DNA of 64,000 nucleotides from Ginglymostoma cirratum. Lineage: Eukaryota. A model generated the notes under the pieces. That model made no database searches and was not told where the DNA came from. It saw nothing but the letters and a program-made list of their open reading frames with translations. Location: assembly GCA_024137785.1 (NCBI GenBank), contig JAHRHZ010000085.1, forward strand, positions 9,613,548-9,677,547, given 5' to 3'. This document shows, piece by piece, positions 2,327-58,200 of this stretch. The translations under genes were made by a program, and so were the position numbers. Each line of letters begins with the position of its first letter. Within the stretch, counting starts at the first letter, position 1.

Positions 2327-2369
2327 ATGAATTTTCGCTGTCTGATTCTACTTGAAGTTATTCTTACAG
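2327..2369 (+). CDS. A1 exon 1, signal peptide MNFRCLILLEVILT
   Basis: ATG at 2327, hydrophobic core, phase-1 donor CAG|GTACTT; conserved at 53259-53313. Confidence 0.8.
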
Positions 2370-5300
2370 GTACTTGCTTACTTAATTGACAGAACTGCTT
2401 TAGTTAATAAAAAGCTTCCGAAGCCATTCGTCATTCATTTAAAGAATCTTATTTCCTCTATCTGGTGAATTATTTAACTCTTCTATCTGTATGCTGTATA
2501 TGACAGTTACCTGTGCTGTACTACGTTTCTAATAGCTGCAGACTGCTCTTGGATCAGTGTTACTCAAACGCCTAAAGAAGTAACTGTGAACAGACGGACG
2601 GACATTACTTTCCACTGCAAATTCACCATCTCTCCGCACAGTTCAAAGCCAGAAGTAATTTGGTGGAAACAGATTGGAAATGAACGTTTTCAGACGAGTG
2701 GAAGAAAACGATTTGGCTTTGGAAATGAAACGTCAGCTTTCTGTAACATTCTTAGCGTTACTGTGCAGGATTCTGGAGTTTATTACTGTGCAGTGATTTA
2801 TCAAGGAATAGGTCAAATAAATGGAACCGGATCCCATTTATTTGTACACGGTAAGTGAGAGAGTGACAATGTCGGAAATATTTCGAAGTAACAAGATATT
2901 TTGGATTGCTTATTTCAACACCTTTGGCAGTATTATCATTGTCATTGGTCATTTGCGCGGCAGCCCACATTTAATATTTCTGTTCTCTTGGAAGAACTGC
3001 ATTTGGACAATGAATATCACAGGCAGAAAACTGCAACATTTATAAATATTAGCCATTTATAATTCCAAAGACAACGTATACACGAATTGTGTATTTCCGA
3101 TACATCGAATTTCGAATGCACACACCCGACGAAAAAGCTCTATGTCAACGCTGTTCCACCACGATTCTTCGTTCGTGGTGTGTTCTTGTTGTCTCGACAA
3201 CTCCCATTTACTAGTTCTGAGGCTCAAGAGTCCAGAAATTAACTCTCACACAATTTTCGCGTCATGGTTTGAAAATCAGTGTGAAATCATTTCCTGATGA
3301 ACGGGATTAATGCAAAAGTAGATACATTTTGAAGCATTCCACGCAGTAGAATCACGTACCTTCAATAAACACGTAAACCAATACTGAGAATCTGTAGCTC
3401 CCAAGGCTAAACTGATTTCATATATTTCTTCATTGGCAATGCTTTCATTTTGAAATTTGGCTAATGCTGTGATCTTCATTTGCAGAACAATCAGCAGCTT
3501 TCAGCGTCATTACACACTTCAGCTTAAAAACACAAGGACTTACGAACATTATTTTCTTTGTCCTTTCCTCTGCCCTGGCTCAATTTAATTAATTCATTCA
3601 ATTACGCGAGCCAAGCATTGCTGAGCATTTTGTTGCTTTCTTCTGCTGTGGAAAATCAAATATTGGATTTAATAGTTCAAGTAAAGGTGAATAAATGCCA
3701 CAGGCATGAAAGCTATTTATTTCATTAGCTGGAAGCTTGTACAAAAATTAAACATACAAGATGCTGCGCGTTTGAATGCTGCGATTATGATAAAGCAGAA
3801 CAACTGAAAATCGTACGAATATTTAACATTTTCAGGTTTTGTCCAATAACTTGGCTTTGTTCATTCTCTTCATGCAGTTGCCCCAGTCCCATTGAAAATT
3901 ACGTCCAAGTTCGACGAAGAAAATTCACTTGTATCTTTGACCCTTCTCTGTGAAACGTCTCCATTTTATCCGGAAGATTTCACCCTCGGCTGGTATAAAA
4001 ATGGCACCGAAATCACAGTCGGAATAAATACTAGTAATGTGCAGAACAGTAACGGGCTGTATGAAGTGACCAGTTCTTTGTCTGAGTCTCAACCTCCCTC
4101 ATACAATACCTGGTATACCTGTTCGGTATCCCACGTCTCCCTCAAGAATCCTGCTGTCATCGTCCACACTATTTCCACATTTGCTCGAGTCCAAAAAGGT
4201 GAGTTAGCTATTGTTAAGCAAGTAACGAAATGTATCGTACAATGTGTGCATATCATGGAGCTAATCCGATGGACTTTTGTGGGAAATGTCTCATTTTAAT
4301 GCATTGTATCAAGTCGTCATTTGTGTTGCAAAAGCAGCTAAACCTAATTGGCATTCGATTTCCTTTATTTATGAAAAGGTAATCATATTCAGAACTGAGC
4401 TGCTCAAACCATTTCTTTCTTTCCGTCATTTTGCGCCGTTCACCTTCTTTGCTTCAGTGTCAAAAAAAATGTTCCATCTGTTTCAACTGCCAGGGGCAAC
4501 AGTGTTTTAGGTTTCATTCTGCCGCTTACCACCGCGTTCCCCGGTTGTTGTATCCAGCGCTGATTTTTAAGACTTTACCCTTTGCGAAGTGTAACCTCTC
4601 ACCCATACACAGCACGTTCAATGAGGATCGCGCTCACACATATCGCAAAGTTTGTGCGATGACTTTACTTGTCCTTGGTGTGGCAGATTTAATGCATTAA
4701 TAGTGTTCTCACTTTGTCAGGGCAGAAAACAACAATTTATTACAACTAATCCGTAGATGTCCTTTGTTATGCAATGAATATCATTAAAACAGTTCATTTA
4801 TTTGCAAAGGGTTCATAACCGATTGCCCCAAACCAGAATTCGATGCGGCCAGCAGAGAAAACGTTTGTGAAATTATGCCTGTAATTTCAGGAAAACATAT
4901 TTTAACATGTAAGAAAAGTCAAGAAGAACAGTATTTTGGTCCATCGGGAATCGATCAGTCTTGTATTCCTACCTCTCCAAAACAGTCCTTTATGATCACG
5001 AGCAGACAATCCATTCCGATGGTTTATTCTGAACTTGCCGTCTGTTCGGAAAAATAAGTCACTTCGACATTCAACTGATGTAGCATTTGGCTCTTCAGCG
5101 TTTTCATTGCCCTTCAGTAGTGTAGAACATATGAAAACATCATCATACTTTATGCAGTAAACTACAGCTAGACTTATTCTTATCCAACTGTTTACCAGCA
5201 AATCATGTCCTCTTAATTCTGCAGGCAATACCAACAATTCACTCGCTTTCTGGGCTCCCATTTGTGCGGTGGTTGGATTCGCATTTCTGGTACTAATGGC

Positions 5301-6857
5301 CGTAATTGCAATGCGACGTGGATTTCAGTCTAACAAAAGTAAGATATACTGTATACTCTTGATTTTCGGTCTAGCTGCACTCTGGGGACAGCAAGCGAGA
5401 AAAAGAGTGATTAGCATGTTCGGGAGAAAGTGAAACGATTTAAAGTCGAAAACGCAAGTGATTAATTTTTCAGTGTGCGCAGATTGTTCCAAACCCATTT
5501 TATAAAGCAAAAATGCTCACAGTTTTGTGATCAGAATTTTAATATTTCTCAGGGGCGTTAGTTAGCAACAGAAAGTTTCACGTTTCAATGCAACTAATGA
5601 CATGTACCATGACAAACATGAAGTTGGTAATTTGATTCTTCTGGTGAGCACTGATTGTTCCTTGAAGAACGGGGGGATGAAAAACAGATGTTGACCATGC
5701 GATACTCTTGATGTTTCTATTAGAAAGTAATCACCATTGTTATGCATCAACTGCATATTCTCAGCGCTTTTCTATCGTTTTGACTGAAAAACTTAAAGCT
5801 TCATTTTTCGTATCGAAACTGGGTTAAAATAATTCCACCACTCAATGTAATTATATTCCATTGGTATGTAGATAAAGAAGGATGCACAAGGCAACCGGAT
5901 CGTCGAGACAAGGTGGTAAGTGCACGTCTCCATCACGATAGGGGTTTGCAGTGTCCGGGGCGATGACAATGAAGGAAGAAATATGCTAATCACGTTAGAA
6001 CATTTTAAGTTTATTTATTGAAGGGCGTGCTCACCCAAGGAGATTTGAAATGCAGTTGCTGCTATGTTGCTATTGATAAAGTATGTTAACGGGATTTTTA
6101 AAAACTTGGTTATATCTAAGAGAATGTTTCTAGTTAATAACACTTTAGAAATGCAGTCAATCTTTAGCTTTGGAAATAAATTTACCGTCCAATGCTTTTT
6201 GACATTGAAACAGATGTTGAAGAATGAATGTGAAAAAGCTTAGCTTGTTAATTTGACTAGTTGTGCATTAACATTTGAATTCACGCGAACATACCTGAAA
6301 AATGGATTTGCAAGTGATCTCGGGCTTAAGTCACATTTGTTCACAGCTTGGTGAACGAATTGTTGAAGACAAGAAATAGCGACTAAATGAAATATTTTGC
6401 TTCTGATCCTCGCAGAAAGCCGCGGCTCAGGGTGTGCATTACGATGCGGTAGAATTCAGCAGAGACAAGAAAGCTCCAAGACGTACATTTGAAGTGGAGA
6501 CATGCATGTACGCTGAGGTAGGGCTGAGAAACAGGAGAAGAACTTAGAATTTCATGATGAAATCGCGATTCAGGCTGCCAATGAGATAATTTGTCTCTGT
6601 TGATATTGACGATCTGAAATATTGAAAGTTGTTTGCGTGCCGTTCTGGTGACCACCTTGCAGAAATCTGGGAAAAAGAGACATTTAAATTTTTTCAAAAT
6701 GCTGCCTTTACAGGTCCGTCAAGATGCTGTCGCTAATGAGGTGCCCTACTGTGCGGTAACGTTGACTAGTTCAAAGAAACCGGAGAAGTACCACAGACCC
6801 AAAGAAGGCACAGAGTATGCTAAGCTGCAGACTGGAAGACGAGAAGAAGTAAGATAA
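2327..6857 (+). CDS. Gene A1: intact 7-exon IgSF receptor, leader-V(J)-C1-TM-ITIM/ITSM tail (SIRP-like / NKp30-like V), 360 aa. Exons 2327-2369, 2536-2850, 3878-4198, 5225-5338, 5872-5915, 6416-6517, 6714-6857
   Basis: All six introns are GT..AG with compatible phases (1,1,1,1,0,0). Exons sum to 1083 nt with no internal stop. Each exon has a homologous exon in the paralog at 53-58 kb. Confidence 0.88.
2536..2850 (+). CDS. A1 exon 2, V-set Ig domain with germline-joined J-like G strand
   Basis: VTQTP..ITFHC..VIWWKQ..DSGVYYCAV..GIGQINGTGSHLFVH; acceptor TAG at 2533-2535 (in-frame alternative CAG 6 nt downstream), donor G|GTAAGT at 2851. Confidence 0.95.
3878..4198 (+). CDS. A1 exon 3, C1-set Ig domain
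   Basis: LTLLCETSPFYPEDFTLGWYKNG..GLYEVTSSL..YTCSVSHVSL contains the C1 signatures FYP and YxCxVxH; CAG acceptor, G|GTGAGT donor. Confidence 0.95.
5225..5338 (+). CDS. A1 exon 4, transmembrane segment (uncharged, one Cys)
   Basis: GNTNNSLAFWAPICAVVGFAFLVLMAVIAM followed by RR stop-transfer; CAG acceptor, A|GTAAGA donor; phase 1-1. Confidence 0.88.
5872..5915 (+). CDS. A1 exon 5, short cytoplasmic exon NKEGCTRQPDRRDKV
   Basis: TAG acceptor, GTAAGT donor, 44 nt; same length and splice sites at 57209-57252. Confidence 0.78.
6416..6517 (+). CDS. A1 exon 6, cytoplasmic, ITIM VHYDAV and CMYAE(V)
   Basis: CAG acceptor, GAG|GTAGGG donor, 34 open codons KAAAQGVHYDAVEFSRDKKAPRRTFEVETCMYAE. Confidence 0.82.
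6714..6857 (+). CDS. A1 exon 7, cytoplasmic, ITIM VPYCAV and ITSM-like TEYAKL, stop TAA
   Basis: TTTACAG acceptor; matches the C-terminal part of ORF 6633..6857. Confidence 0.85.
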   Translation, partial: VRQDAVANEVPYCAVTLTSSKKPEKYHRPKEGTEYAKLQTGRREEVR

Positions 6858-9129
6858 GATATCTATGGACAAGAAGAAATCGCAAGCCTTAACAGTTCAG
6901 AGAGAGAAGATATTTCTAGGACCAGTACTGATTGCATTCTTTTGCGTTTTGAACTTCGGGCCTGCTCAATCTCACTTCTCCGTGAGCATGAATCACAGTG
7001 ATATATCGGATAGCCGTAGTTAGTACCAACCACTCTAATACCCGGTTAATTTTATTTCGTTGTTTTCAAGAGCCCCAGCGAACTGCATTGAAAGTCATGT
7101 GCAAAGTTACTTTGCGCGCAGGGAGTGCTGCCTATCAAAGGTGCTCACTTGCTCTCTTCTCATGCATTGAGTTCCCGGCCTCTTACATCGTCTCAGAATC
7201 CGCGCCTGGCCCTGCTGTTAGCGCAGTCTCAAAGCCATGCAGCTTTTTCTTGCAGGTGAACAATCCTTAATCAATAGGACATTGAACCTGATGTATGCAA
7301 TGTGCTACATAACCCTAACCCTACAATCTGTGCCAGCAGTTTATATGCCAAAGACACATGTGTAGCCAGCAGGCAGCCGTATCTCAAAGGGAACAGTCCA
7401 TTGTGGCATCAGGCACTCGGGATTTCTTGCAACAGCCTCCAATATCATTCTAAGGGATAAGGAAAGGTCAGGTGCCTGATCAAGTTGGTCTTGATCAGAG
7501 TCCGCAGTCCAAGGATTAGGACATTGTCATTCCTGCAGCTTCATAGAGGTTAGTCCGTGGGTGAGAGCAAACGTAGCCAGTAGATTCATAGACATGAGTC
7601 AAGGATCTGGGCTCAGCTTGTCCAGGGCTGTCCAGTTAGGTCTGTCCACGGAAACTAGACGAAAAAGGGAATGACAAATAAAAATGTCTAGGAGGGTTAG
7701 AAAGAAATGGGGAGCAGGCAGGAAAGTGGATTTGAGGTCGAAATGAAATCAATCATGTTTGCATTAAGTAGTGGAGCAAATCCAGGGACTGAATGGGTCA
7801 ATCCTGCCCATGGCTCTTATTTTCTTTTGTTCTTAGGAGTGTCAGTCCCTTTAGTCAAAAGGCAGTGGATGCAGAGTGTTAAAAATATTTTAAGGCAGAA
7901 ATAGATAGGTTGTTGATGAAGAAGGGGATGATAAGTTATCGAGGATATGCAGGGATGTAGAATCGAGGCTAAAATTTGATCAGTCCCAATCTCATTCAAT
8001 GGCAGATCATATTTGAAGGGTCGAATAGTCAACTTTGGTTTCTATATTCGCATGGTCCCAACATAGAAGGGTTGGTGTCACTTGAAGGACACTCGGTAAT
8101 TTCATCGTGCAGTTTGGATAATACTGGCTAAATGGGGATTAGGAGCAATGACAATTGTGAAGGCGGTGCCGTTTTTTAATGACCACAGCATGTAAACGAC
8201 AACTAGGAATGGAATGAGGGAGGAGGATGATTCATCCGTAGTGACGATCGCCTTGACATGAAAGAGGGGAATTGCAAGACTATATAGTCACCTCATATTC
8301 CAAGGGGCCGGAGATGTTGGAGGTGAGTGGGGCTGGAAGTGTGAGTGGACATGTAGACAGGTTAGGTGGGGACCTCTGGAGATTTAAAGCCTCTGGTGGT
8401 TCGGCAGAAGGGCGATCAGTAAAGGAATACGGATGTTCTGGAGTTCCCACATATTGAGGTTGCGGGAAGTCACTGGACAAAGATCGATCACAGTTTCCTT
8501 CGATGTTGCTGGCATTCTGAAGCGTGTAATGTGAAGCACAATGGTGAAGAACACACAGCGTGAGCATTTCTACCTGTCAGGCAGGGGTCTGCATGAATCT
8601 GCTAGTATGAGAAATCACATCACACAAATGCCCATGAACGGTACAGAACTCAGACCTGCACGCTCCCTGATTCCTGGCAATGATAAAACATTAACCCCAA
8701 GTGTGGTGTATACCTCACAGATATGGATAAGTTCATTCACACCAGCACCTTTGCACTGAGAGTCAAAAGAAATGTTTCAAGATGTTTCACCATAAAGGAC
8801 AGTGCCAGCATAACCCATTGCTCAAAATCCCCTCATAGGTTTTTATCTCCTTGTCCCCATCACTATATGTCAGCGTTTTCTCTGGTTTCATAAGAGTGAA
8901 TCTGCTGAGCCGTGGAAACTGTTGGCATTGGACGTTTTGCAGGGAAGCCTCAAGATTTGCATCTGTCCTGAATACTGTTTTGATTGTATTGGATAGCTCA
9001 ACAAGAAGGCAATGAACACCAAAGTGGAAATTTTGTGCTTAATATTTGATTACTTAGCATGAATCCCAGTTTTCTATGGAACATGAACAGAGTTATTCGA
9101 TTTATCAATGCTATGTCTCTGCTTTTCTT

Positions 9130-9706
9130 ACTGGTTATAGTCCAACAAGTTTGTTTGAAAATTCAAGTTTTCTGAGCTCAGCTCCTTCCTCAGGCGTAGT
9201 ATTAGAGAGAGAGAGTGCATAAGACGCAGGTTTTATCAGCAGAAAGGTAACAATGATAAAACTGGTTGCCTTTTGTTGAATCTTTCATCAGTTAGGAACT
9301 AAACTACTGATTAAAATGCAAAATCCAGATTCTTTCAAGTCATTGTCCCGAGATAATTACAGATTTTATCAATATGTACAAGAGGTGAAATCTCAGGTCA
9401 GATGATACATTTTAGCTGTGAGGTCTTGCTTAGAATCTGTCTATGTTTTAAACTGGGGTCAGTTTTTTTAATCAAAACAGAATATGTCTGCAATTACATT
9501 ATCTTGTTGGATGAAGTCATTCATGTGTGTCTGTGTCTGTGTATGTGTGATTGAGAGATTGTGAGTGTGAGGGAGTGTATGTGTGTGAGAGTGTGTGAGT
9601 GCATGTGTGAGAGTGTGTGAGAGCGTGTGTGAGAGAGATTGCATGCGTGTGACATACACAAACACATACTCGTGGGTACACTTTCTTTCTCGATTTCCGT
9701 CTCTCA

Positions 9707-9755
<49 letters not shown>

Positions 9756-10235
9756 AGTCACGGACAGACACTCACATACACACAGATGAATTATTTCATC
9801 TAAGGTGGTTCTCTAGTTGCAGATACATTCTGTTTTGCTCAAAAAATAAAACCTGACCCCAGTTTAAAACATAAACAGATTCTAAGCAAGACATCACACC
9901 TAAAATGTATTGTCTGACCTGAGATGTCACCTCTTGTATACATTAATGAAACCTTTAATTATCTCGGGACAAAGACTTGAAGGAATCTGGTGTTTGCATT
10001 TTAATAAACAGTCTCTTTCCCTACTGATAAAAGATACAACAAAAGGCGCCAGTTTTAGGGTTGTTACCTTTCTGCTTATAACTTTTGTTTCTAATACCCT
10101 CTCTCTCACACTACACCTAATGAAGAAGCTGATCTATGAAAGCTTGGATTTTCAGATGAACCTGTTTGACTATAACCTGGTGTCGTGTGATTTTTGATCT
10201 TGTCCACCCCAGTCCAACACCAGCATCTCCACATC
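9130..10235. repeat. Fold-back structure: ~400-bp imperfect inverted repeats around (GT)n/(CA)n microsatellites
   Basis: 9135-9470 is the reverse complement of ~9850-10180; (CA)n at 9708-9750; degenerate CTGANGA..GAAA motifs near both outer ends. Confidence 0.75.
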
Positions 10236-13371: not shown

Positions 13372-16300
13372 TGTTATAAAGTGAAGGTTGACGTCCTCCG
13401 AAAACCCAAAAGAGAAGCACCTCTGTTAAAATCTGGTGTAACCTGCCTTTCAACAACTTCTAGTGTCTAAGTAAAATTAATCCCTGATACTCACTTTACA
13501 ATCAACAAGTAACAATTTATTTATCTAACGTTAACATTGAACTAATTAACCACATTATTAGCAAACCAAATAAACCCCTTCTAACAACTAACTATTCCTG
13601 AATAAAACAAAATTCTACTAGTATGCTGCTCCAGGAAGTACAAGGCCTAGTTAAAAAAAAGCATAGAATTTAGTCTGTTGAAATTACAGCCAGATTACAC
13701 ATCTTCTGGAATCTTTTGTGCCTTCGCCATTGATTCTTCTGTCAGGAATCTTAACTAGTAGTGTGTAGGTAGATTAGTTCTTTAGACGGTACTTTCTCTA
13801 AGATGTAGAGAAGAGTGTGAGAGTTAGCAATTCTCCCTTTTGAGCTGAGTTGTTAACTCTGGCAGATGCCTGTTTGTTCTCCTGTCTTTGTCCAACTGCG
13901 CTCTTCCTTTATATCATCTACCAGTTTTCTTACACTAGGATCAGTCCTATGTTGTCAAAACTATCAGCTTTAAATTTAATTGGTTTTAGGATCTAAGTGC
14001 CTGGTTCAAATTGATTGGCTAAATTCAGAACTTGCTGTCCTGGTATAAGCAGTTGCCGGGCCTGCTAATTACATGGCCATTTGATACAAATGTTTCAGTT
14101 TGGTTGCTCTTTCCACAAGTATTCTATTGAACTTCGCAACACCTCCCCCTTAATAAAAAAAAGAAAAGATGACTTCATCTTTTTTTAAAAACCTTAACCC
14201 CACCATTTTGTTAACCTAGAGTTAAATTTTTTATACAAATTCAACACATATACAACATTGAAAACTACCATTTCTTTCTGTATAACATTTTACTTTTTAA
14301 AACCCACAGTAAAGCATCTGTGATAATATTTTCACAATCTGTGACATGTTCTTTTATTGAACAAACCCATCAACAGTGCCACTATGCAACCAAAGTTTGG
14401 AACAAACATCCTGTAGAATCTGCTCAACCACAAAAATCATAGCACTTGCTTCTTCGATGGTGGTATTGGAAATTCCTCAATGGCCTTTGTCTTCATATTC
14501 CTTGGTGTCATCCGAAGTTGTGTCCTAAGAATGTCACTTCCACCTTCACAATGTTGTTTTGCCAAGATTATGACCAACTTTGCCTTCAGTCGTGTCTCAA
14601 AGAGCTCTGCCAAATTCTCCATGTGATCTTTCCACGAATGACTACAGGCCACTAAGTCATGCATGTAAAGAGCACAATTAATCAATCCTGCTACAACTCT
14701 GTTCCAAGTCTTTGAAAAGTGGCTGGTACGTTTTTGGCTCCAAAAGGCATTACTTTAAATTGATATAGCCCATTTGTGTTTACAAAATCAGAAGCTTCTT
14801 TTGCTCACTCCAACCAATGTACTTGCCAGTGACTGCAAAGTAAGTCCAACTTTGTGATGTAACTGGATTGTCCTACATTTTCCTCACAGTCCTCCATCCT
14901 TGGAATTGGATGTGAGTCAGACTTGGGCACAGTATTGACCTTCCAATAATCAGTGCAGAATTGTTGAGTCCCATCAGGCTTGGGAACCAAGATGTTTGGC
15001 GAGCTCCACTCGCTTTTACTTGCCTGTATGTTATCTTCTTGGGGCATCACTTCTACTTCTTTCTGACCCTGCTCTGGTTTGAGAGGATTAAGACTGTAGG
15101 GGTGAGATAGCAAGAACTGCAGATGCTGGAGTCAGAGATAGCAAAGTGCAGAGCTGAAGGAACAAAGCAGGCCAGGGAGCATCAGACAAACAGGAAAGTG
15201 GGAGTTTTGGGTCAGGACTCTTCTTCAGAAAGAAAGACTACAGGTGTGTTATTTTATTGGAACAGCAGTCCCTGATTCAGACTCAAATACTGTGGCATTA
15301 GTCTCCTAAATCTATTTCCGCATTAGACTTCAAAGCACTGCAACAAGACTTTCAATTTAGCTCTCTGTTTCTGGGACAGATAGGTCACTACCCTATCCCA
15401 TTCCTTAAGGACTTCCTCAGTATTCAATAATTTTTGAGGCACCTCAAAATCCACATAATCTGGATTTGACTCCTCTCTCTGTGTGGCAGTAACTAACACC
15501 CATTTCTCTGGTTCCCCTTCCCACTCATAGTAAGGTTGCAGCATGTTCACATGGCATACCCAATAATTTTTTTCCTATCTGGCATCTTTACCAGATAATT
15601 TGCCTGGTGTAACTTCTTCCCAATCTGATAGGGATGACTAAACTTGGCTTTAAGGGGATTTTATACCATTGGTAACAGCACTGATACTTTACCCATGGAC
15701 AAATGTATGCATTTTAGATTTCTTACCTGCTTCTTGCTTCATCTTGCGCTGTACCACTTTCAAATGTTGTTTAGCTAATTCACCTACGCTGTTCAATTTT
15801 TCTCTCACCTCAGATTCATAATCCAACTGTGACATCTCTGACCTTGGACCTATCAACATTTCCTTAATTAATATTAAAGGCCCTTTTATTTCGTGTCCAA
15901 ATATCAATTCAAATAAAGTAAACTGAGTTGATTCATTTGGAGCATCGCTAATAGCAAATAATATAAATGGGATACCTTTGTCCAAATCATTTGGCTAATC
16001 CTTGTAATAAGCCCTCACCATTGTGTTTAGGGTCTGATGCCACTTTCCCAATGCTGTCTGGAATTCAGTATGGTACACACTTGGTTTAAAATGTTGGATG
16101 CCCAAGATCTCTACGACACCCTTATATAATTTGGCAGTAAAATTGAACTCTTGGTCTGACTGAATCTCCCTGGGTAGGAAACAACGGGTAGGGAAAGCAA
16201 TCAACTCCTCCACGACCTTGTTTGCCTCGAAATTGCGTAATGGAATTGCATCTGGAAATCTGAAAGAAACATCCATTGTGTTTAGGAAATACTGGCTCCC

Positions 16301-35777: not shown

Positions 35778-35877
35778 NNNNNNNNNNNNNNNNNNNNNNN
35801 NNNNNNNNNNNNNNNNNNNNNNNNNNNNNNNNNNNNNNNNNNNNNNNNNNNNNNNNNNNNNNNNNNNNNNNNNNNNN
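35778..35877. other. Assembly gap (100 N) with ~200 nt duplicated on either side
   Basis: 35575-35777 is repeated at 35878-36080 with a few substitutions. Confidence 0.95.
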
Positions 35878-37340: not shown

Positions 37341-37368
37341 CTGATGAAGGGTTTAGGCCCGAAACGTC
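37341..37368 (+). ncRNA. Minimal type I hammerhead ribozyme motif in the Penelope terminal repeat
   Basis: CTGATGA-A-GGG-TTTAGG-CCC-GAAAC-GTC: conserved core boxes, 3-bp stem II, GUC cleavage triplet. Confidence 0.7.
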
Positions 37369-37759
37369 AAGTTTTCCTGCTCCTATGATGCTGCTTGACC
37401 TGCTGTGTTCATCCAGCCCCATGCTTGTTATCAAGGATAAACCCTACTGTGAAATTAGCCCTCAAGTATTACTCCGGGGAAGACCAACTGCCGAACAAAC
37501 CCTCGCTAGGGGTTGGGTGAAGGGAATAAAGGAACTGTGTAGACTGGCCAGCTGTGTATTCCTAGGTAATCCGTTTCGATGTCAGTGCGGTACTGAATTC
37601 ACACAGCGTGACTCGTGTGGTTTCTTTTAACTGTTTACAAGTTGTAGTTCGGAATATTTTGATATTTGGATATTTTTGATATTTGGTATTTTTTGGTACT
37701 TTTGAGAATACAAGAGTGAATTGTTTAAGGTAAAGTGTCCTGTGTACCTTCAAAAATTC

Positions 37760-46625: not shown

Positions 46626-46859
46626 GACTCTTACAGCTTTTGACCTGGTGTATAAAGGGAAGAATGCTTGCGGGAAATGACTAATAGTTGATGATTTAAA
46701 GTATTGACAAGAAATTTGGTTCAATTTAAATGCTTGCCTTCATGTTCCAGGAAGGATATCAGTGAACAATCATCCTGAATATTAATAGCCGTAACGTTTA
46801 GGCTGTACGTATATATGAATTAAACTAGGGCTGGCTGTTCTTTTTGAACTGTTAGCTTC

Positions 46860-47165
46860 CTGCCTCAGGGACCATATGTGTGACAGCAGCTGACGTCTTC
46901 AGTGAGGTATAAGAAACAACAGGTATATGTGGTGTTACTTCGGACAGGCTGCATCTCAAACATCATGCTTGAAACTTCATACAGCTCATCGTGGTTCTTC
47001 ACTTGAGTTGAATGTATTGCTGTTGTGTTTTCAATGCCATTTTTATACCAAGTGAGGGTGAGTTCCTACGAATAAAGTGAAGCTAGTTCACACGCGAGAA
47101 TTATAGACGCAGATGGATTCCTTTCGAATGGTCTCGAGACAATCCTCAGGAAGCTTAGGTCGTCG
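46860..47165 (-). pseudogene. Divergent C1 pseudo-exon (gene B)
   Basis: SIILACELASLYS*ELTLTWYKNGIENTTAIHSTQVKNHDELYEVSS..NTTYTC; in-frame TAG at 47066-47068 and a later frameshift. Confidence 0.85.
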
Positions 47166-47360
47166 CTTTGTAGAATACAAGCAAAAAGTCATTACTTGAT
47201 TTTGCTGAGAGAAATTAAATGTAAGCTGTCTTTACGTTCGGTACTTTTACGATAAGAACGCCATTTGAAGGGGGGGGCTTCTGTCATTTTAATGTTTCTC
47301 ACATCATCTGCACCTACGAATTGAATGTAAACGGCAGAATGCGTTCACCTTCATGACAGA

Positions 47361-49728
47361 GATAACAAGCATGGGGCTGGATCAAGCAGCATCATAGGAG
47401 CAGGAAAACTTGACGTTTCGGGCCTAAACCATTCATCAGAAATGGGGGAGGGGAAGAGGGTTCGGAAATAAATAGGGAGAGAGGGGGAGGCGGATAGAGG
47501 ATGGATAGAGGAGAGGATAGGTGGAGAGGAGGCAGACAAGTCGAAGAGGCGGGGATGGAGCCAGTAGAGGTGAGTGTAGGTAGGGGGGTAGGGAGGAGAT
47601 AGGTCAGTCCAGGGAGGATGGACAGGTCAAGGGGGTGGGATGATGTTAGTAGATAGGAGATGGGGGTGTGGCTTGGGGTGAGAGGAAAAACAGATTAGGG
47701 AGGTGGAGATGAGCTGGGCTGGTTTTGGGATGCGGTTGGGGGAGGGGAGATTTTGAAGCTTGTGAAATCCACATTGATGCCATTGGGCTGCAGGGTTCCC
47801 AGGTTGAATATGATTTGCTGTTCCTGCAGCCTTCAGGTGGCATCACGGTGGCATTGCAGGAGGCCAAGGATGGACATGTCATCTGAGGAATGGGAGGGGG
47901 AGTTGAAATGGTTCGCGACTGGGAGGTGCAGTTGTTTGTTGCGAACTGAGCGCAGGTGTTCTGCAAAGCGGTCCCCAAGCCTCCGCTTGGTTTCCCCGAT
48001 GTAGAGGAGGCCACAACGGGTACAGCGGATGCAGTATACCACATTGGCAGATGTGCAGGTGAACCTCTGCCTGATGTGGAAAGTCTTCTTGGGGCCTGGG
48101 ATTGGGGTGAGGGAGGAGGTGTGGGGGCAGGTGTAGCACTTCCTGCGGTTACAAGGAAAAGTGCCGGGTGTGGTGGGGCTGGAGGGGAGTGTGGAGCGGA
48201 CAAGAAAATCACGGAGGGAGTGGTCCCTCCGGAAGGCAGATAAGGGTGGGGAGGGAAAAATGTCTTTGGTGGTGGGGTCTGATTGCAGATGGCGGAAGTG
48301 TCGGAGGATGATGCATTGGATCCGTAGGTTGGTGGGGTTGTATGTGAGGACGAGGGGGATTTTTTTTGGTTATTGTTGCGGGGACAGGGCATGAGGGATG
48401 TGCTCCGGGAAATGCGGGAGACACGGTTGAGGGCGTTCTCGACCACTGTGGGCGGGAAGATGCGGTCCTTGAAGAATGAGGACATTTGAGATGTGTGGGA
48501 TTGGAATGTCTCATCCTGGGAGCAGATGCGGCAGAGGCGAAGGAATTGGGAATAGGGGATGGCATTTTTGCAGGAGGGTGGGTGGGAGGAGATGTATTCC
48601 AGGTCGCTGTGGGAGTCAGTGGGCTTGAAATGGACATCTGTCTCTAGGTGGTTACCCGAGATGGAGACAGAGAGGTCCAGGAAGGAGAGAGAAGTGTTGG
48701 AGATGGTCCAGGTGAACTTCAAGTTGGGGTGGAAAGTGTTGGTGAATTGGATGAACTGTTCAAGCTCCTCGTGGGAGCACAAGGCGGCACCAATGCAGTC
48801 ATCAATGTAACGGAGGAAGAGTTGGGGTTTCGGGCCAGTGTAGGTACGGAAGAGGGATTGTTCCACATAACCTACAAAGAGGCAGGCATAGCTTGGGCCC
48901 ATGCGGGTACCCATGGCCACCCCCTTTGTCTGTAGGAAGTGGGAGGAATTGAAAGAAAAGTTGTTGAGGGTGAGGACGAGTTCGGCTAGGCGGATGAGCG
49001 TGTCGTGGAGGGGGCTTGGCCCGTTCTGCGGGACAGGAAGAAGCGGAGGGCCTTTAGGCCATCAGTATGGGGAATACAGGTATATAGGGACTGGACGTCC
49101 ATAGTAAAAATGAGGTGTTGGGGACCTGGGAATTGGAAGTTCTGGAGGAGGTGGAGGGCGTGGGTGGTGTCACGGACTTAGGTAGGGAGTTCCTGGACCA
49201 AGGGGGTGAAAATGGAGTCTAGGTAGTTGGAGATGAGTTCGGTGCGGCAGGAGCAGGCGGAGACAATGGGTCGACCAGGGCATTCTGGTTTGTGGATTTT
49301 GGGGAGGAGATAGAAGCGGGCGGTGCGGGGTTGGGGAATGATGAGGTTGGAGGCGGTGGGTGGGAGGTCACCTGAGGTGATGAGGTTGTGGATGGTTTGG
49401 GAGATGATGGTTTGGTGCTCGGGGGTGGGGTCATGATCCAGGGGGCGGTAGGAGGAGGTGTCAGAGAGTTGGCGCCTGGCCTCAGCAATGTAGTGGTCAG
49501 TGCGCCATACTACGACTGCGCCTCCCTTGTCCGCGGGTTTTATGGTGAGGTTGGGATTGGAGCGGAGGGAGTGGAGGGCTGCACGTTCTGCGGGGGAGAG
49601 GTTGGAGTGTTTGAGAGGGGTAGAGAGGTTGAGGCGATTGATGTCTCGACGGCAGTTGGAGATGAAGAGGTCGAGGGAGGGTAGGAGGCCTTGGGGTGGT
49701 GTCCAGGAGGAGGGCTTGTGTTGGAGCT
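47361..49728 (-). mobile_element. Second, 5'-truncated and frameshifted copy of the same Penelope-like family
   Basis: Near-identical reverse complement of ~34760-37432; ORFs 47646..48920 and 47833..48042. Confidence 0.93.
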
Positions 49729-50065: not shown

Positions 50066-50927
50066 CTGATTAGGATATTGTGCGCTCCAGACAGTTTCTA
50101 TTCAATATTTTCAGACACGTTACCACACACATGTATGTGTGGTAGCTGTGCTTCCTGGCTCAGAGTTAGGGACAGTACTACTGCACTACTAGACCCATAC
50201 ATCATGTCCTCCATTACATCAATTCAAATTGGTTTCAATTTCCTTCACAGGTTCGTAATATAGATAATATTTCAAATAATTCAACCTCCAAAATGACAAC
50301 CTACCGTATTTGGAAGTAATGCTCATCACTGCCTCTCAAAAGGAAAACGTGTAGTTGATTGTGTGCTCAGCTTGCAACATGCTGGCGCATCTTGTTCTTC
50401 AATTTCACAATTACCTCGTCAGATATGTTGCACGTCTCCATCCGGCTTCCTTCGTACTGCTCTGTTTTCATCGTCTCTCATAAAACTCAAAATGACGTCA
50501 GTCAGAGGCACACGTTCTAGTGCGCACGTCTATGACAGTGGCAGTTAATATATCGCCCCTTTCTCAACCTGTAGCCCCGGGCATTTCAAGCTATCAAAGG
50601 TGTTTCAAAGCTTCTTCTGTGTTATCTAGCACAATCTGGTTACATTCATTGTCAGGCTGCGAAGCGCGGTCAGAACCTCCATTTCAGAGAGAAGTTTATT
50701 CTCCCAGAGAGTGTGAACCTGCGGAATTCTTAGTCGTAGAAGGCAGTTGAATGTTTTCATGAAGAGGTTAAATATAGTTCTTAGAGATAAAGAATTAGAA
50801 GGATGTGGGAAGAAAGCAAGAATAAGGTACAAAGCTGGATGATTAGCCAGAACCATTCTGAACGTTAGAGCAGGTTTGAGTGGCCAAATAGTCTACTCCT
50901 GCCACTATCTGGACCAGTCTGAGTTTC

Positions 50928-51550
50928 TGTTCTGGATCACAGCGTGCATCCAAGCGGTTCTTTTCAGACTCGGGTAAAATAACCAAGAGAAGGCTCAACA
51001 ACAGCAACTTGCTTAAATATGAATGTTTATTTAGTAATAATAGATTATAATGGCAATAGTAAATGATTATAGTGGTAATGATAAATGGAAAGAAAAAAAA
51101 AGGAAAAACAAAAAACAAGTCTCACGCCTTTCTAATAAAAGTAACAAGTCTCATGCTCGGCCTATCAGGGACCCCTCAATTGATGGCTGGTCTGGAAGCT
51201 TGTGTTCGTCCCTGGCACTATTCACGATTCCGAGCCGAAGCGAAGTGCAGCAGCAGCAGCAGCAGTAGCTCGGAACGAAACTCTCTCTCTCATACAATAT
51301 CACAAACAATCGGTGCTGATAACAAAAGATACAATAGACGAAACTGCTGGGTCTTATAGAAAAAAGTAAGTTTTTGGGTGTGTTGTCTGCAGCACGTACG
51401 GGAATGTTCACATGAATCATCCAAGGTCATACGGCTTGTTAATTGTTATTCTAAATTGCCTAGCCTACTTTCCTATCCTGTACAATATATTTTCTCATGC
51501 AGCTGTCGAACATCATCATTAACTTTCAGACCTTCGGCCTATCATATTCA
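50928..51550. mobile_element. Probable solo LTR (623 bp) containing a short (CAG)n run
   Basis: TG..CA ends, flanks GTTTC/ATTTC (5-bp duplication with one mismatch); absent from the paralogous site at ~361-366. Confidence 0.6.
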
Positions 51551-53479
51551 ATTTCCGAAAGGCAAATTATGATTTGCCTAAAGAATGGACAATCCTGATG
51601 AGGACCATACCGGTGTTGTGATACATGTGGACTTGCAAAACAATTTAATCGAGACTGACGAGGAAGGGCAGATAGCAATCCTACTGCGTGTAGAATCAAA
51701 TCAAAATTGCTGTACATGTAGCAATGATATAAATCAGAGAAAAGTGCGAGCAGACAACATCAAATTAAAGGAACAGTTTTACATTGAGTTCTCGAGTGGA
51801 GGGACCGGAGGTATTTGTGCACGGATTGGTGAAGGTGACAGTGTAGGTAGAGCAAATGATGAATAATTGTTCCTTAGTCCTTGGCCTTTATAAGTATAGT
51901 CATATTGCACAAAGGCAAGGGAATTCTGGTGCAGATTCACCAAACACGGCTGTATCGCGTACCTTTCTGGCCTTTGCACGTCAGGAACGGTTTGAATGCA
52001 TTTCAAAATAGAGCTGAAACAATATGTAAGAATGATACGAAGCATTCAATTTTATACATTTTGGAGGAAGATTGTAATTCCGACATCATGTTGCATTCAA
52101 AAGATAAATTTATAAGTGCGTTCATTGTCATTAAAAAAGTGGCAACCAACATACCTTACTAACATTTGCAAAGGGAAATCCGCCAAAAAAACAGGTAATC
52201 TGCGATTGTGTTGATTGAAGCATAAATATTGGCAAGAACGCCACCAGATTGGATATTTAATATCCAGATTCCAACTTCAATTCCAGCCTTGGGTGATAGT
52301 GTAGAGTTTGCACCTTCTCCCCGTGTCTGCGGGTGCTCCGATTTCTTCCCATCGTATAAGACGTGCATGCTAAGTGGATTGGCAATGCTAAATTGCCCAT
52401 AGTGTCCAAGGTTGTGCAGGCGAGGTGGGTTAGCCAGGGGATATGCAGAGGGTCGGTGAGACTTGGTGGGCCGAATGACCTGTTTCCACGCTTTAGGGAT
52501 TTTGTGATCCATGATCCATTCCAGCATGCAGAATGGCTTCCGTTTAATGTCACATTGGAAAGCCAGCACCTCTGCCACTGCAGTGCATCACATTACTGTC
52601 TGTCTTGGTTTGTGCTTTCATTCCTAGAATATTACTTGCACCTAGAAAATTCCAGCGCAGGAAGGAAATTCCAACTCGTGGAGAGATGGCTGACAAAAAA
52701 AACCAGCGTGTTTCCATGAATGCAGGAGGAAGTTTAGTGGAGAAACTCAGGCTATTTCCATTTAAGAAGAAGTTGAGATGAGATTTGATGCGCCTGTTCA
52801 TATCATGAGAGTCCTGAAGAAAATCAATAATGATCTATTGATCCCATTGGCGCAAGTTCCAACAACCCGAACCTCCGATTATGGTAAAAGTCAAAACAAA
52901 TGACAAGTGCCCAAAAATACGATTAAGATCTGAATTCACTGAGTAGGAGAGGAATGGAAACAGATCTACTCGTGTTTAGAATCAGTATGGACATTAGCAA
53001 TGTTAGTTAACTCTGCATTTGAAAATCAAATGCCTTTGCCGAATGTTCGCTTCCCGTGATACATGAGATTTCAGGAATGAAATAAACATAGAAACTGCAA
53101 AGTATCGTTGAACATATGAGGCTCCAATGACCAAATGTTCTCACAGAATGTTAAACGTCATCGGGATGTATCTCGTAGAACACAATTAGGAAACGAATCT
53201 TAGCAGTTACCAACTCGGAGTAACAGTACAGAGTCGTCAGTTGAATCCATTGCTCAGGATGTCAGCGAGGATCAATTTTCGCTGTCTGATTCTACTTGAA
53301 GTTATTCTTACAGGTACTTGCTTATTTAATTGACAGAACTGTTTTAGTTAATGAAAAGCTTCCGAAGCCATTCGTCATTCATTTAAAGAATCTTATTTCC
53401 TCTATCTGGTGAATTATTTAACTCTTCTATCTGTATGCTGTATATGACAGTTACCTGCGCTGTACTACGTTTCTAATAG

Positions 53480-53794
53480 CTGCAGACTGCACTTCGTTCA
53501 GTGTTACTCAAACGCCTAAAGAAGTAACTGTGAACAGACGGACGGACATTACTTTCTACTGCAAATTCACCATCTCTCCGCACAGTTCAAAGCCAGAAGT
53601 AATTTGGTGGAAGCAGATTGGAAATGAACATTTTCAGACGAGTGTAAGAAAACGATTTGGTTTTGGAAATGAAACGTCAGCTTTCTGTAACATTCTGAGC
53701 GTTACTGTGCAGGATTCTGGAGTTTATTACTGTGCAGTGATTTATCAAGGAATAGGTCAAATAAATGGAACCGGATCCCATTTATTTGCGCGCG
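53480..53794 (+). CDS. A4 V(J) exon, open reading frame
   Basis: ORF 53530..53802; 12 nt differences out of 315 from the A1 V exon; intact splice sites. Confidence 0.9.
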
Positions 53795-54825
53795 GTAAGT
53801 GAGAGTGTGATAATGCCGGAAATATTTCGAAATAACAAGACATTTTCCGATCGCTCATTTCAACAACATTGACGGTATTATCGTGGTTACTGGTCATTTG
53901 TGCAGTAGCCTACACAAGATATTTTTGCCCTCTGGAATGGTTGGCAATTAGATAATGAATATCACAGGGAGAAAACTGCAACATTTATAAATATTAGCCG
54001 TTTAGACTATAATTCCAAACACAACGTGTACACGAGGTGTATATTTCCGGTGGGTCGAATTTCCAATGCATATACCCGACGATAACCCGCTAATGTCAAT
54101 GCTTTTCCACTATGATTCTTAGTCTGCGTTGTATTCTTGTTGTCTTGACTACCCTCAATTGCTGTTTCTGGGGTTTGAGCGTCCAGAATTATATCTCACA
54201 TAATTGTTTCGTCATGGTTTGAAAAATCAGTGTGGAATTACTTCCTGATGAGCAGGATCAATCCAAATGAATTTCAATTTTGAAGCATAGCATGGATTAG
54301 AACCAGGGACCTCCAATAGATGTTTAAAACAAGACAAAGAATCTGTAGCTCTTGAAGTTCAATTTATTTAATACATTTCTTCATTAGTAATGCTTTGGTT
54401 TTGAAACTTGGCGAATGCAATGATCTTCATTTGAACAACAATCAGCAGCTTTATCGTCATTATACACTTGAGCTTAAAACACAAGAGCCGACAAAAATTA
54501 TTTCCTTTGTCCTTTCCCCTGCCATGGCTCAATTTAATTAATTCATTCAAATATACGAGCCACACATTGTTAAGCATTTCGTTGCTTTCTTCTGCTGTGG
54601 AAAATTAAGTATTGGACTTGATACTTCAAACAAAGGTGAAAAAATGCCACAGGTAGGAAAGTTTTATCTTCATTGCCTGGAAGCTTGTACGTAAAATTAG
54701 AAAGACAAGAAGCTGCGGTTTTGAATGCTGCAATATAACAAAGCAGAACGGCTGAAAATCATACTCAAATTTAATATTTTCCGATTTTGTCCAATAATTT
54801 GGCTTTGTTCATTCTCTTCATGCAG

Positions 54826-55145
54826 TTGCCCCACTTCCACTGAAAACTACGTCCAAGTTAGACGAAGAAAATTCACTTGCATCTTTGACCTTTCTGTGTG
54901 AAACATCTGCATTTTATCCGGAGGATTTCACCCTCGCCTGGTATAAAAACGGCGCCGAATCTACAGTCGGAATAAATACTAGTAAGGTGCAGAACAGTAA
55001 GGGACTGTATGAAGTAACCAGTCCTTGTTTGAGTCTCAACCTCCCTCAGACAATGCCAGATATACCTGTTCGGTATCTCACGTCTCTCTCAAGACTCCTG
55101 CTGTCGTCGTCCATAATATTTCCACATTTGCTGGAGTCCAAAAAG
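54826..55145 (+). pseudogene. A4 C1 exon, frameshifted
   Basis: LTFLCETSAFYPEDFTLAWYKNG..GLYEVTS, then out of frame; the second Cys (YTCSVSH) is in another frame; donor gcgagt. Confidence 0.85.
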
Positions 55146-56143
55146 GCGAGTTCGTCACTCTTCAGTATCATGTGCGCATATCATGGAGTTAGTCCGCGGT
55201 ATTTTCGTGCGAAATGCCATAATTTAATGCATTATATTAAGTTGTCATTTGTGTTGCAAAAGCAGCAAAACCTTATTGACAATCGAATATGAAATAGCAA
55301 TTTTGTTCAGAATTGAGCTTTCTGTCCGTTTCTTTCTTCCTATCATTTTGACTTTGTTCACTGTCTTTACTTCCGTGTACACAAAATGTTTCATCCCCGA
55401 CAAGTGTCTATTTTCCCTGTACTGTTGTCAGGAGCAACATTGTTTTGTTTGGTTTCAGCCTGCCTTTTACCACCGCATTCCCCGTTGGTTGTGTCCAGGT
55501 CGGATTTCTAAGACATCCCTTGTCAAATGTAATCTCTCACCCGTCCACGGCACGTTTAGTTGGGATTGAGTTCACATATTTCACAAAGTGTATGTGATAG
55601 CCTGACTTGCCGATGCCGCGTTAGATTTAATGAATTAGCAATTTGCTCACTTTGTCAATCGTTTGTCACAACACAAACAACAATTTATTACACCTAACCA
55701 GTAGATGCCATTTATAATACAATGACTATCATAAATACAGTTCGTTTATCTGCAAGGGGTTCGTGACCAATTGCCCCCATCCAGAATTTGATGTGGCCAG
55801 CAGAGAAAATGTGAAATCATCCCTGTAGATTCAAGGAAACACTGTTAATAAGTAAGAAAGTCCCAAGGAGAATCGACTCATCTTGTATTCCTACCTTTCT
55901 AAAAGTCCTTTGAGATCCACGAACTGAAAATCCATCCCAAAGTTTGATTTAGAACTTTCTATCTGTTGGAAAAGGAAGACTGTTCGATATACAACTGAAA
56001 TAGGCTGTGGCACTTCAACTTTTTCATTGCTCTTCAATCAAGCGGTGCAGCCGAAAACATCATCGTATTTTAAGCAAGAAACTACAGTGACCCTAATTTT
56101 TATTTAACGATCACGCGCAAGTAATATCCTCTTAATCCTGCAG

Positions 56144-56257
56144 AGAGTATCAACAATTCACTCGTCGTCTGGTCTTCAGTTCGTGAAGTGGTTGTTTCGG
56201 CGTTTCTTGTAATACTGGCCATAATTGGAACGCGTAACGCGCTTGAGCGTATCAAAA
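56144..56257 (+). CDS. A4 TM exon with Arg-Glu near the N-terminal edge of the membrane segment
   Basis: Same 114-nt length and splice sites as the A1 TM exon; open frame ESINNSLVVWSSVREVVVSAFLVILAIIGTRNALERIK. Confidence 0.8.
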
Positions 56258-58042
56258 GTAAGCTCTACTCTCAACTCCTGATTTTCTCACAAGGTCAACG
56301 TCGTTTGCCGTTTCTGGAAAACAAGCGGGATGCTGAGAAGGTGGCCTATTGGGGAGAAAGGTTCGTGGGAACTTGAGTGGGCCATTCAGGCCCTTCGAGC
56401 CTGTTCTGCAATTTAAAGAGATGATGGCTGATCCATGGCTTAACTCTATATTCATATTCCTAAATACCTTTGCTTAACAAAAATAAAGCGATCCCAGATA
56501 TAAAATTAAAATTAACATTTATTTGTTGAAAAATCTTCCAAACTTGTGTGTAGATGTGGTTCCTTACAACTTTCCTGAACGGTCTTCGAAAATTTTTAGA
56601 GTATACCCACCAGTTCTAGAATCTCCAGCCAGTGCAAATAGTGCATCTTATCCACACCGTCTTTTCCTATTAGCGTCTTGAAGACTTCAATCAGATCATC
56701 CCTTAGCCTTCTAAATTCGAGAGAAAACAGGCCTAACTTGTCGAATCTCTCCTTTGAATTAAATTCCTAGTGTCCAGTTATCATTCTTGTAATTGTACAA
56801 CGTACTCCCTCCAAGGCAAATGAATATTTCCTGCGGTATGTTGGTCAGATCTGTTCACAGTTGACGTAAATGTTATCAAACATAAGTATTGCTCACGTGT
56901 TCGTTTCGAAAAGCAAATTTCATTTTTCAACATGAGAAATGAAATGCACCCTGACAAACATGAAATAGGTAATTCGATCCTTCTGCCAAGTAATCGTTGC
57001 TCGTTGACAAGCTGGAGGATCAAAATCAGATATCGATCTTACAACCCTTTACCTCTGCTAGCAAAGTAATCAAAGTTGTTCTGCCTCAAAAGAACACTCT
57101 TACCCTTTTTCTATCACTTTGATTTAGAAAAGTGCAGGCTCATTTTCCGCATGGAAACCTAGTCAATATTTCCATCTCTCAATGCAATTATATTTCATTG
57201 GTTTGTAGATAAAGAAGAACACATAAGGCAATCAGAGTGCCACGACAATGTGGTAAGTTCAAACCTTCATCACACTAGGAATTTGAAATGTATGGGCCAA
57301 TTGCAATAATCGAAGAAATATATGCTAATATCGCCAGAACATTCTATGTCTTTTTATTGAAAAAAACTATTCATCCGGTATGTGTATGCGTCAAAACCAG
57401 GTTTGAAGTATAGTTTGTACAATTGTGTTACTGACAAAAGGCGGTGAATGGATCTTCCTGAAAAGAAGACTATTCATATCTTTGAGACTGTTTCTAGGTT
57501 GAGCCATTTTTTTTAGTTTTGAGAACAAATTTACTGTCTAACTTCACTGCCTTTTAACATTAACATGGTGTTCCAGCATGAATATGAGGAAGTTTGAATT
57601 GCTGAATTGAACACCGCGATTAATATTTGTTTTCATGCAAGTATATCTGTAATGTGGATTCTGTAAGGGATGTCGGGCCTTGGTTAAATTTGCTCACTGC
57701 TTTGATGAACAAACTGTTCAAGACAATGAAATGAACGCTTATTGAAGTGTTATAGTTCTTGTCCTCGCAGGAAGCCGCGGCTGACGTCTCAGCAAAGACA
57801 GGAGAACTCCAAGATGTACATTTGAAATAGTTAAAAGCATGTATGCTGAGGTAGGTAGGGGTAAGGGAACACAAAATCAGAATGAAATCGTGATTCTGGT
57901 TGTCAACAATGGCATTTGCTTCTATGGATATCAGCCAAATGATACTTTGAAGTTTTTTTTTCACGTCCTTCTGTTGATTACTTGGCAGAAAGTGTAGAAA
58001 AAGAGACCAGTTGTACAACATTTCCAAGTAGTGTCTTTACAG

Positions 58043-58200
58043 ATCTCACAAGTCGCAATCGGAAATAAGATGACCGTAAGCTACTTTAACGTTCACTGTT
58101 TCTGTGAAGGAGGCACAGATAATGCTTGAGCTGCAGACTGGAAAACAAAGCGAAGTAACAGAAGACATTTATCCACAAGAAAACAATAACAAGCCATTAA
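58043..58200 (+). pseudogene. A4 decayed terminal (ITIM/ITSM) exon, probably now 3' UTR
   Basis: TTTACAG acceptor; homology to 6714-6890 (ELQTGKQSEVTEDIYPQ) with indels disrupting the two upstream Tyr motifs. Confidence 0.7.

Follow-up and report, generated by a model that had tools for sequence, protein, structure and literature searches.

We analysed a stretch of 64,000 nucleotides (nt) from Ginglymostoma cirratum (GenBank assembly GCA_024137785.1, contig JAHRHZ010000085.1, positions 9,613,548 to 9,677,547 of the forward strand), here called the window and numbered from its first letter. A first-pass annotation, made from the letters alone, had proposed that the window holds a paired inhibitory/activating receptor system. 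It contains two homologous genes, A1 and A4, in which a V exon with a built-in J-like motif (V(J)) is followed by a C1-set exon, a transmembrane (TM) exon and cytoplasmic exons (Table 1). Judged by its sequence, A1 can be taken with high confidence to be an intact inhibitory SIRP-like VJ-C1 receptor gene. For A4, we put the chance at about even that it is a recently disabled non-inhibitory partner of A1.

Anatomy of A1 and A4

Joined models of A1 and A4 were built from window coordinates and used locally, and external searches were run with single exons or with database proteins. The 1,077 coding nt of A1 carried no insertion or deletion (indel). The J-like strand, YYCAVIYQGIGQINGTGSHLFV, lay within the V exon, so that V and J-like motif formed one contiguous exon ending at a splice donor. 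The heptamer of the recombination signal sequence (CACAGTG/CACTGTG) was absent within 2300-3100 and 53240-54050. A rearranging immunoglobulin (Ig) or T-cell receptor (TCR) gene is ruled out by this arrangement, and the non-rearranging V(J) scaffold proposed for the locus is confirmed. The cytoplasmic tail of A1 contained five tyrosines, of which four fit Yxx[VL] (VHYDAV, CMYAEV, VPYCAV and TEYAKL) and the fifth lies in EKYHRP. The uncharged TM and four tyrosine motifs first read in A1 were thus found again. VHYDAV and VPYCAV match the pattern [ILVS]xYxx[ILV], that of an immunoreceptor tyrosine-based inhibitory motif (ITIM), and TEYAKL resembles an immunoreceptor tyrosine-based switch motif (ITSM). 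By its motifs, A1 would bind a ligand through its V domain, become phosphorylated on the tyrosines of the ITIM/ITSM-like motifs and recruit SHP-type phosphatases. The exon model is supported by the zebra-shark protein XP_059507523 (P0152), which was 63.5% identical to A1 over residues 1-355, has its parts in the same order and carries corresponding tail motifs. The TM of A1 matched those of Heptranchias P0163 (3e-10) and P0152 (5e-09).

In its TM exon, which reads ...VWSSVREVVVSAF..., A4 has CGT (Arg) in place of the TGT (Cys) of A1. The 22-nt deletion in its second cytoplasmic exon takes out the VHYDAV codons, and the tail read in frame from the TM exon contained zero tyrosines. All three features agree with what had been read at first pass, namely a TM arginine by TGT>CGT at the cysteine position of A1, a lost first ITIM and a tyrosine-free tail. 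Beyond the 22-nt deletion, three more indels break the frame of the tail exons. Apart from its 1-nt deletion, the deduced C1 domain of A4 was conserved, with 80 of 105 residues identical to P0152. Relatives P0003 and P0152 have two in-frame Met codons in the leader (M-x-A-R-M), the ancestral state. A1 kept only the downstream Met (its upstream codon is ATT) and A4 only the upstream one (its downstream codon is ATC), so each copy has retained one ancestral Met and still has a start codon.

Table 1. Receptor genes, conversion tract and family relics in the window (window positions).
Feature	Position	Strand	Content
A1 gene	2327-6857	+	seven exons, 358 codons; reading frame uninterrupted; canonical AG/GT borders
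A1 leader exon	2327-2369	+	split leader, phase 1; ATG at 2327; GT donor; joined model in frame; leader of Chiloscyllium P0003 similar
A1 fused V(J) exon	2542-2850	+	Pfam V-set, 5.6e-11; YYC...NGTGSHLFV J-like motif in the same exon; AG/GT borders
A1 C1-set exon	3878-4198	+	Pfam C1-set, 1.1e-11; LLCETSPFYPEDF...YTCSVSH; AG/GT borders
A1 connecting peptide and TM exon	5225-5338	+	uncharged TM, SLAFWAPICAVVGFAFLVLMAVIAM; conserved Cys in PICAV
A1 cytoplasmic exon 1	5872-5915	+	NKEGCTRQPDRRDKV; in-frame model; 12/14 residues identical to zebra shark P0152
A1 cytoplasmic exon 2	6416-6517	+	VHYDAV ITIM; CMYAE/V
A1 last coding exon	6714-6857	+	VPYCAV, EKYHRP, TEYAKL, then stop; P0152 counterparts VTYTTL, EVYHIP, TEYAAL
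Gene-conversion tract	A1 2255-2861 / A4 53199-53805	+	end of 5' flank, leader, intron 1, V; 22 mismatches in ~600 nt
A4 gene	53259-58163	+	direct duplicate, ~50 kb from A1
A4 leader exon	53259-53313	+	upstream ATG used; ATC at the position of the A1 ATG
A4 V(J) exon	53486-53794	+	intact; Pfam V-set, 4.2e-09; 12 nt and 8 residues different from A1
A4 C1 exon	54826-55145	+	1-nt deletion near 55021/55023; GC donor at 55146-55147
A4 TM exon	56144-56257	+	...VWSSVREVVVSAFLVILAIIG...; Arg at the Cys position of A1, Glu next
A4 cytoplasmic exon 1 homologue	57209-57252	+	AG/GT borders retained
A4 cytoplasmic exon 2 homologue	57771-57850	+	22-nt deletion; SMYAEV remnant out of frame
A4 last-exon relic	58043-58163	+	+1, -25 and +1 indels; TEY changed to TDN
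Broken family copy	21821-24581	-	V 3' end 24521-24580; intron with N gap 23533-23932; degenerate C1 22709-23065
Isolated 3'-flank fragment	28643-29444	-	homologous to A1 6806-7571
V-exon relic	33106-33441	+	in-frame stop
C1-exon relic	46826-47260	-	in-frame stop

The receptor family and its known relatives

A HMMER scan with the A1 V exon returned 225 proteins at E<=0.001 from 1.84 billion representatives. Wherever the source was traced, the full-length single-domain V matches were all chondrichthyan, from sharks, rays and chimaeras (Chiloscyllium, Stegostoma, Mustelus, Heterodontus, Scyliorhinus, Carcharodon, Heptranchias, Hypanus, Hemitrygon, Mobula, Leucoraja, Amblyraja, Narcine, Pristis and Callorhinchus). 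The family layout was mostly V-C1-TM, and many members had long tails in which [VL]TYAxL and TEYAx[IL] motifs recur. The V(J)-C1 architecture put forward in the first-pass annotation is real. Automatic NCBI and UniProt names for its members were inconsistent: SIRP-alpha-like, SIRP-beta-1-like, NCR3 ligand 1-like (NCR3LG1), tapasin-related-like (TAPBPR), Ig lambda-like and MHC class II beta-like. A literature search found no paper describing this chondrichthyan V(J)-C1 family.

A subset of the family, present in at least eight species, carried an Arg embedded in the TM, within its outer third, together with a short tail lacking ITIMs (for example P0026, P0029, P0051, P0085, P0088, P0097, P0102 and P0079). 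These tails were free of tyrosine, except one with a single juxtamembrane Tyr. On the ectodomain tree, the Arg forms were scattered and the well-supported branches force at least five changes of tail type, which indicates that ITIM and Arg types have interconverted repeatedly. One such contrast was between two skates, as P0084 of Amblyraja (thorny skate), an ITIM form, and P0079 of Leucoraja (little skate), an Arg form, were 95% identical over 213 ectodomain residues. Both ITIM-type and Arg-TM-type copies were thus found in other elasmobranchs, and on these sequences a paired-receptor reading is well supported for the family. The locus belongs to a large germline-joined VJ-C1 family with both ITIM and Arg-TM forms, chondrichthyan wherever it was traced, and the window would carry part of a tandem cluster of this non-rearranging, SIRP-like family of membrane receptors. 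The number of domains also varied among members: P0084 was V-C1-C1, with a duplicated C1 and thus the SIRP-like number, and P0037 and P0057 were V-TM-ITIM with no C1. Gain and loss of C1 therefore occur naturally in the family.

In an AlphaFold model of P0152 (from a 28-member alignment), two confident Ig domains with block-mean pLDDT (predicted local distance difference test) values mostly of 90-97 were followed by a TM helix and a disordered tail. Its Foldseek neighbours were Ig light chains, and its best PDB matches included V-C proteins as well. The matches from structure searches were of a generic two-Ig-domain kind (Fab light chains, with B7-H6, PD-L2 and Rst tied at Z 15-17) that do not tell the families apart.

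To our knowledge, C1-set domains are seldom found elsewhere than in Ig, TCR, the major histocompatibility complex (MHC) and a few relatives such as SIRP, tapasin and B7-H6. SIRP-alpha is inhibitory, and SIRP-beta has a charged TM and pairs with DAP12. The family resembles SIRP in that a C1-set domain follows a V domain whose G strand is J-like, and in that inhibitory members with several tail tyrosines occur beside short-tailed members whose TM contains a basic residue. The nearest protein-language-model clusters of P0152 were SIRP-alpha (0.97 and 0.96), many family members had been auto-named SIRP-alpha-like or SIRP-beta-1-like by NCBI, and the family profile aligned the V and C1 domains of SIRP-alpha in one stretch (2wng, 2.6e-32), in a search whose PDB ranks are inflated for multi-domain antibodies. 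The spacing VPYCAV...KKP...TEYAKLQT in A1 may resemble that of ITYADL...KKP...TEYASIQT in human SIRP-alpha. A tail-only search with residues 256-368 of Callorhinchus P0023 returned the query as its sole match. Unlike SIRP, which has two C1 domains, A1 and most relatives have one, and the non-inhibitory forms of the family carry a TM Arg where SIRP has Lys. With one C1 exon between V and TM, A1 does not have the strict V-C1-C1 architecture of SIRP. A 2026 survey placed the origin of the SIRP family at Tetrapoda (PMC13262535). If the relatedness to SIRP suggested here is true, the SIRP lineage and its paired logic would move back to the base of the jawed vertebrates, and the family would add material to the debate on antigen-receptor precursors.

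Three non-rearranging VJ(-C) genes have been described in sharks, namely NKp30, UrIg and UrIg2 (PMC10751288, PMC12227049). NKp30 (NCR3) shares with the family a non-rearranging V with a J-like motif and, in its activating form, a TM Arg; its V-TM(Arg) layout would be shared by a hypothetical A4 with C1 skipped. In contrast, most family members, A1 included, combine a C1 domain with an ITIM tail, and NKp30 did not come up among the top PDB sequence matches for the V exon. Membership in NKp30/NCR3 is ruled out for A1, and A4 would fit only with C1 skipped. UrIg and UrIg2 are likewise elasmobranch genes with a germline-joined VJ exon, a split leader and C1-type domains, and UrIg2 (9dmx) was the top PDB sequence match of the A1 C1 exon, with an E-value of 2.6e-17 that is the sum of three modest domain matches. 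With its 9-11 C domains, UrIg2 assembles into disulfide-linked dimers, expression is mainly in liver (UrIg and UrIg2) and gill (UrIg2), UrIg protein occurs in the extracellular matrix, and ITIM or charged-TM pairs were not described in the paper on the two genes (PMC12227049). The genes considered here differ from them in their single C1, their signalling-type tail and their large multigene family, and membership in UrIg/UrIg2 is ruled out by the one C1 domain as opposed to several.

Teleost NITRs, KIR, LILR/PIR, CD300 and the Siglec-5/14 and Siglec-11/16 pairs follow the same paired inhibitory/activating logic. They are built of V and I/C2 or of C2 domains only, with no C1, and are not homologous as far as compared. 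The PRARP genes of chicken and other non-mammals (Fu et al. 2019, cited in PMC10751288) reportedly combine a non-rearranging VJ, a C1, a TM and an ITIM tail.

Conversion, selection and the status of A4

The duplicated unit spans at least 7.5 kb (9-7570 versus 50571-58900), and A4 would be an old direct duplicate of the A1 unit. Over V and C1, the two proteins shared 87% of residues and were sister rows on the family tree. Their V exons differed at 12 of 309 nt (96.1% identity) and 8 residues, as the first-pass annotation had counted, although the exon is 309 and not 315 nt long. A global alignment of the two units showed a mosaic of identity: 90.6% in the proximal flank (1860-2326), 97.7% in both the leader and intron 1, 96.1% in the V exon, 81% in intron 2, 89% in the C1 exon, 76% in intron 3 and 65-79% from the TM exon onward. 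At the V donor, mismatch density rose from ~3% to 15-25%, which marks a sharp 3' edge of the tract. Because intron 1 is as similar as the V exon, the likeness of the two V exons reflects recent gene conversion over ~600 nt, and the V identity is, on this pattern, not evidence of selection on the ligand-binding face. Among the 12 V differences, 4 were synonymous and 8 non-synonymous (omega 0.55, on too few changes to interpret). In Siglec pairs, it is through gene conversion that the partner stays similar to the inhibitory gene at its ligand-binding end. The proximal flank, leader, intron 1 and V of A4 would have been overwritten recently by conversion with A1, which keeps the binding domains alike. 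The equal conservation of intron 1 and V can also be read as a mere by-product of local gene conversion, which pseudogenes undergo too; we regard this as possible, though on the doubtful side.

Selection differed between the parts of A4. In C1, synonymous divergence between A1 and A4 (Ks 0.206) equalled that of the flanking introns (0.215-0.286) and non-synonymous divergence was lower (Ka 0.091), whereas the TM exon gave a Ks of 0.448 and a Ka of 0.376. The ratio omega was 0.84 for the TM exon and 0.86 for cytoplasmic exon 1. A ratio near 1 across A4, proposed at first pass as one mark of a decaying duplicate, was thus found in TM and cytoplasmic exon 1 but not in C1. Residue differences were assigned to lineages using five outgroup proteins. 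Lineage-specific changes numbered 3 in A1 and 3 in A4 for V, 8 and 7 for C1, and 5 and 19 for TM plus cytoplasmic exon 1. A neutral simulation for the C1 of A4 gave an expectation of ~22 residue changes and a 71% chance of a stop, as opposed to the observed 7-11 changes and no stop (P<=0.004). In these sequences, the C1 of A4 shows purifying selection on its own lineage, and only the TM and tail diverged fast. It follows from this pattern that the frameshift in C1 is of recent date, allelic or an error.

The C1 constraint bears directly on a second account of A4, which we hold as tentative. It says that A4 is a plain decaying duplicate that was never activating or a decoy, and it puts the 22-nt deletion, the other indels and the Arg and Glu of the TM down to neutral damage. 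The deficit of changes and the missing stop in C1 are contrary to it. So are the retained start codon, the lack of any indel or stop in TM and cytoplasmic exon 1, and the seven splice sites 3' of C1, which are all canonical (estimated P~0.05 at a neutral divergence of 0.22 per site). The freedom from indels in TM and cytoplasmic exon 1 is not significant when the A4 lineage alone is counted (~1.5 events expected, P~0.2).

Several observations weigh against A4 as a partner of A1, and many of them are what a decaying duplicate would show. The C1 exon of A4 is one base shorter than that of A1 (CCAGTTC versus CCAG-TC) and its donor is GC instead of GT. A normally spliced transcript loses the frame and terminates within the TM exon, and no V-C1-TM(Arg) protein is encoded as assembled. 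The TM exon was 68% identical between A1 and A4, no better than the flanking introns (66-76%). In TM plus cytoplasmic exon 1, A4 changed at the neutral rate (19-25 changes versus 19.4 expected by simulation); the omega values given above fit with this, and since these exons change neutrally, the Arg of A4 may be drift. The Arg is followed directly by Glu (GCG>GAA relative to A1) and stands one column C-terminal of the family Arg column. A search with the TM exon found no protein with an A4-like TM, the best match being gapped with an E-value of 0.009. The TM arginine looked for in other copies and species does occur there, usually one column N-terminal of that in A4. The locus also holds four other dead family fragments and retroelements. 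A search of public sequencing runs found no RNA run containing the locus, and DNA runs contained it at a low share (<=0.16). Four DNA runs from four samples, at >=98% identity, gave no contigs inside A4 and no read support for the 1-nt deletion. Their contigs lay only at 53000-53033, 58355-58400 and a few short repeats, and such holes in coverage carry no weight as evidence. The paired cluster first proposed is supported for the family, with its ITIM and Arg-TM forms, and only in part for the pair A1 and A4, given the frameshift, the converted V and the atypical Arg of A4.

We consider it unlikely that A4 is alive today. The 1-nt deletion would then be an assembly or allelic artefact, leaving a V-C1-TM(Arg) receptor with a short tail, or C1 would be skipped, leaving an NKp30-shaped V-TM(Arg) receptor with an adaptor carrying an immunoreceptor tyrosine-based activation motif (ITAM). 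Both C1 borders are in phase 1, and skipping the exon keeps the frame and yields a 195-residue open reading frame (ORF) with V, TM and a 43-residue tail free of tyrosine. The weakened GC donor could favour such skipping, C1-less V-TM members occur in the family (P0037 and P0057), the C1 constraint marks the lesion as recent, and the assembly has gaps and an unresolved overlap. The same lack of reads and RNA speaks against a living A4, as does the indel-free coding sequence of A1, which indicates that assembly indel errors are rare here. An Arg-Glu pair in the TM is also atypical for receptors that pair with adaptors (general knowledge), and a search with Chiloscyllium P0003 among proteins of 89-283 residues, a range that takes in any annotated A4 product lacking C1, returned only P0003 and P0162, none from this genome. 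The more specific version, in which C1-skipped A4 is a living 195-residue V-TM(Arg) receptor kept ligand-matched to A1 by gene conversion, strikes us as improbable. Were it true, a cartilaginous fish would show an NKp30-shaped activating receptor in the act of arising from an inhibitory gene of the SIRP-like V-C1 type.

The reading of A4 as a recently disabled non-inhibitory partner brings these parts together. The constrained ectodomain, fast-changing anchor and discarded ITIM tail look like what would be expected of a non-inhibitory partner until recently, as far as the sequence goes. On its own lineage, A4 would have lost its ITIMs through the 22-nt deletion and further indels and gained Arg for Cys in the TM, with C1 remaining under purifying selection. 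It would most likely have been a working partner, activating or decoy, until recently, and would now be disabled by the 1-nt C1 deletion in this assembly. Signalling, adaptor pairing and the idea that A4 ever signalled are what we infer from these features. A1 and A4 would then offer a compact example of how a pair is made and lost: conversion homogenises the binding end, the tail decays, the TM becomes charged and a frameshift disables the gene. The surprise is moderate, as paired families are common in vertebrates and the 'activating' A4 is not intact.

Relics, repeats and gaps

Between A1 and A4, the first-pass annotation had counted at least four more broken members. Four fragments were found there, but they do not amount to four genes (Table 1). 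Neither of the two assembly gaps touches A1 or A4. One, a run of N at 23533-23932, interrupts the V-C1 intron of the broken copy on the minus strand and stands between inverted repeats of ~100 nt. The gap of 100 N at 35778-35877 lies inside a retroelement and is bordered by 203-nt direct duplicates (35575-35777 and 35878-36080, 96.6% identical). This direct duplicate indicates that the sequence does not run continuously through the gap, that the scaffold join is an unresolved overlap, and that the 884-residue ORF across the gap is not real as written.

The retroelement, which we take to be a Penelope-like element, was present in two inverted copies, 34294-37432 (+) and 47361-49726 (-), that were 95-96% identical. 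Its long ORF contained a Pfam RVT_1 domain and a C-terminal GIY-YIG-like stretch (...LLHIGETKRRLGDRFAEHLRSV...). The two copies, interleaved with the dead family fragments, stand around the V relic at 33.1 kb and the C1 relic at 47 kb. A repeat of ~120 nt, probably a miniature inverted-repeat transposable element (MITE)- or short interspersed element (SINE)-like element or a terminal repeat, occurred in at least seven copies that were 83-99% identical (379-498, 23370-23489, 23944-24037, 32811-32942, 37346-37438, 47359-47434 and 61297-61419). Two of them, inverted to each other, stand on either side of the N gap at 23533-23932, and others lie at the ends of the retroelement copies. On the minus strand, a broken run of ORFs at 14805-18371 gave retrotransposon-like translations (integrase- or reverse transcriptase-like), with unconvincing Pfam results for the two ORFs tried. 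At 9133-10177, ~1 kb of DNA matched its own reverse complement at 75%, consistent with a palindromic or inverted repeat, and a (TG)n microsatellite adjoins it near 9.7 kb.

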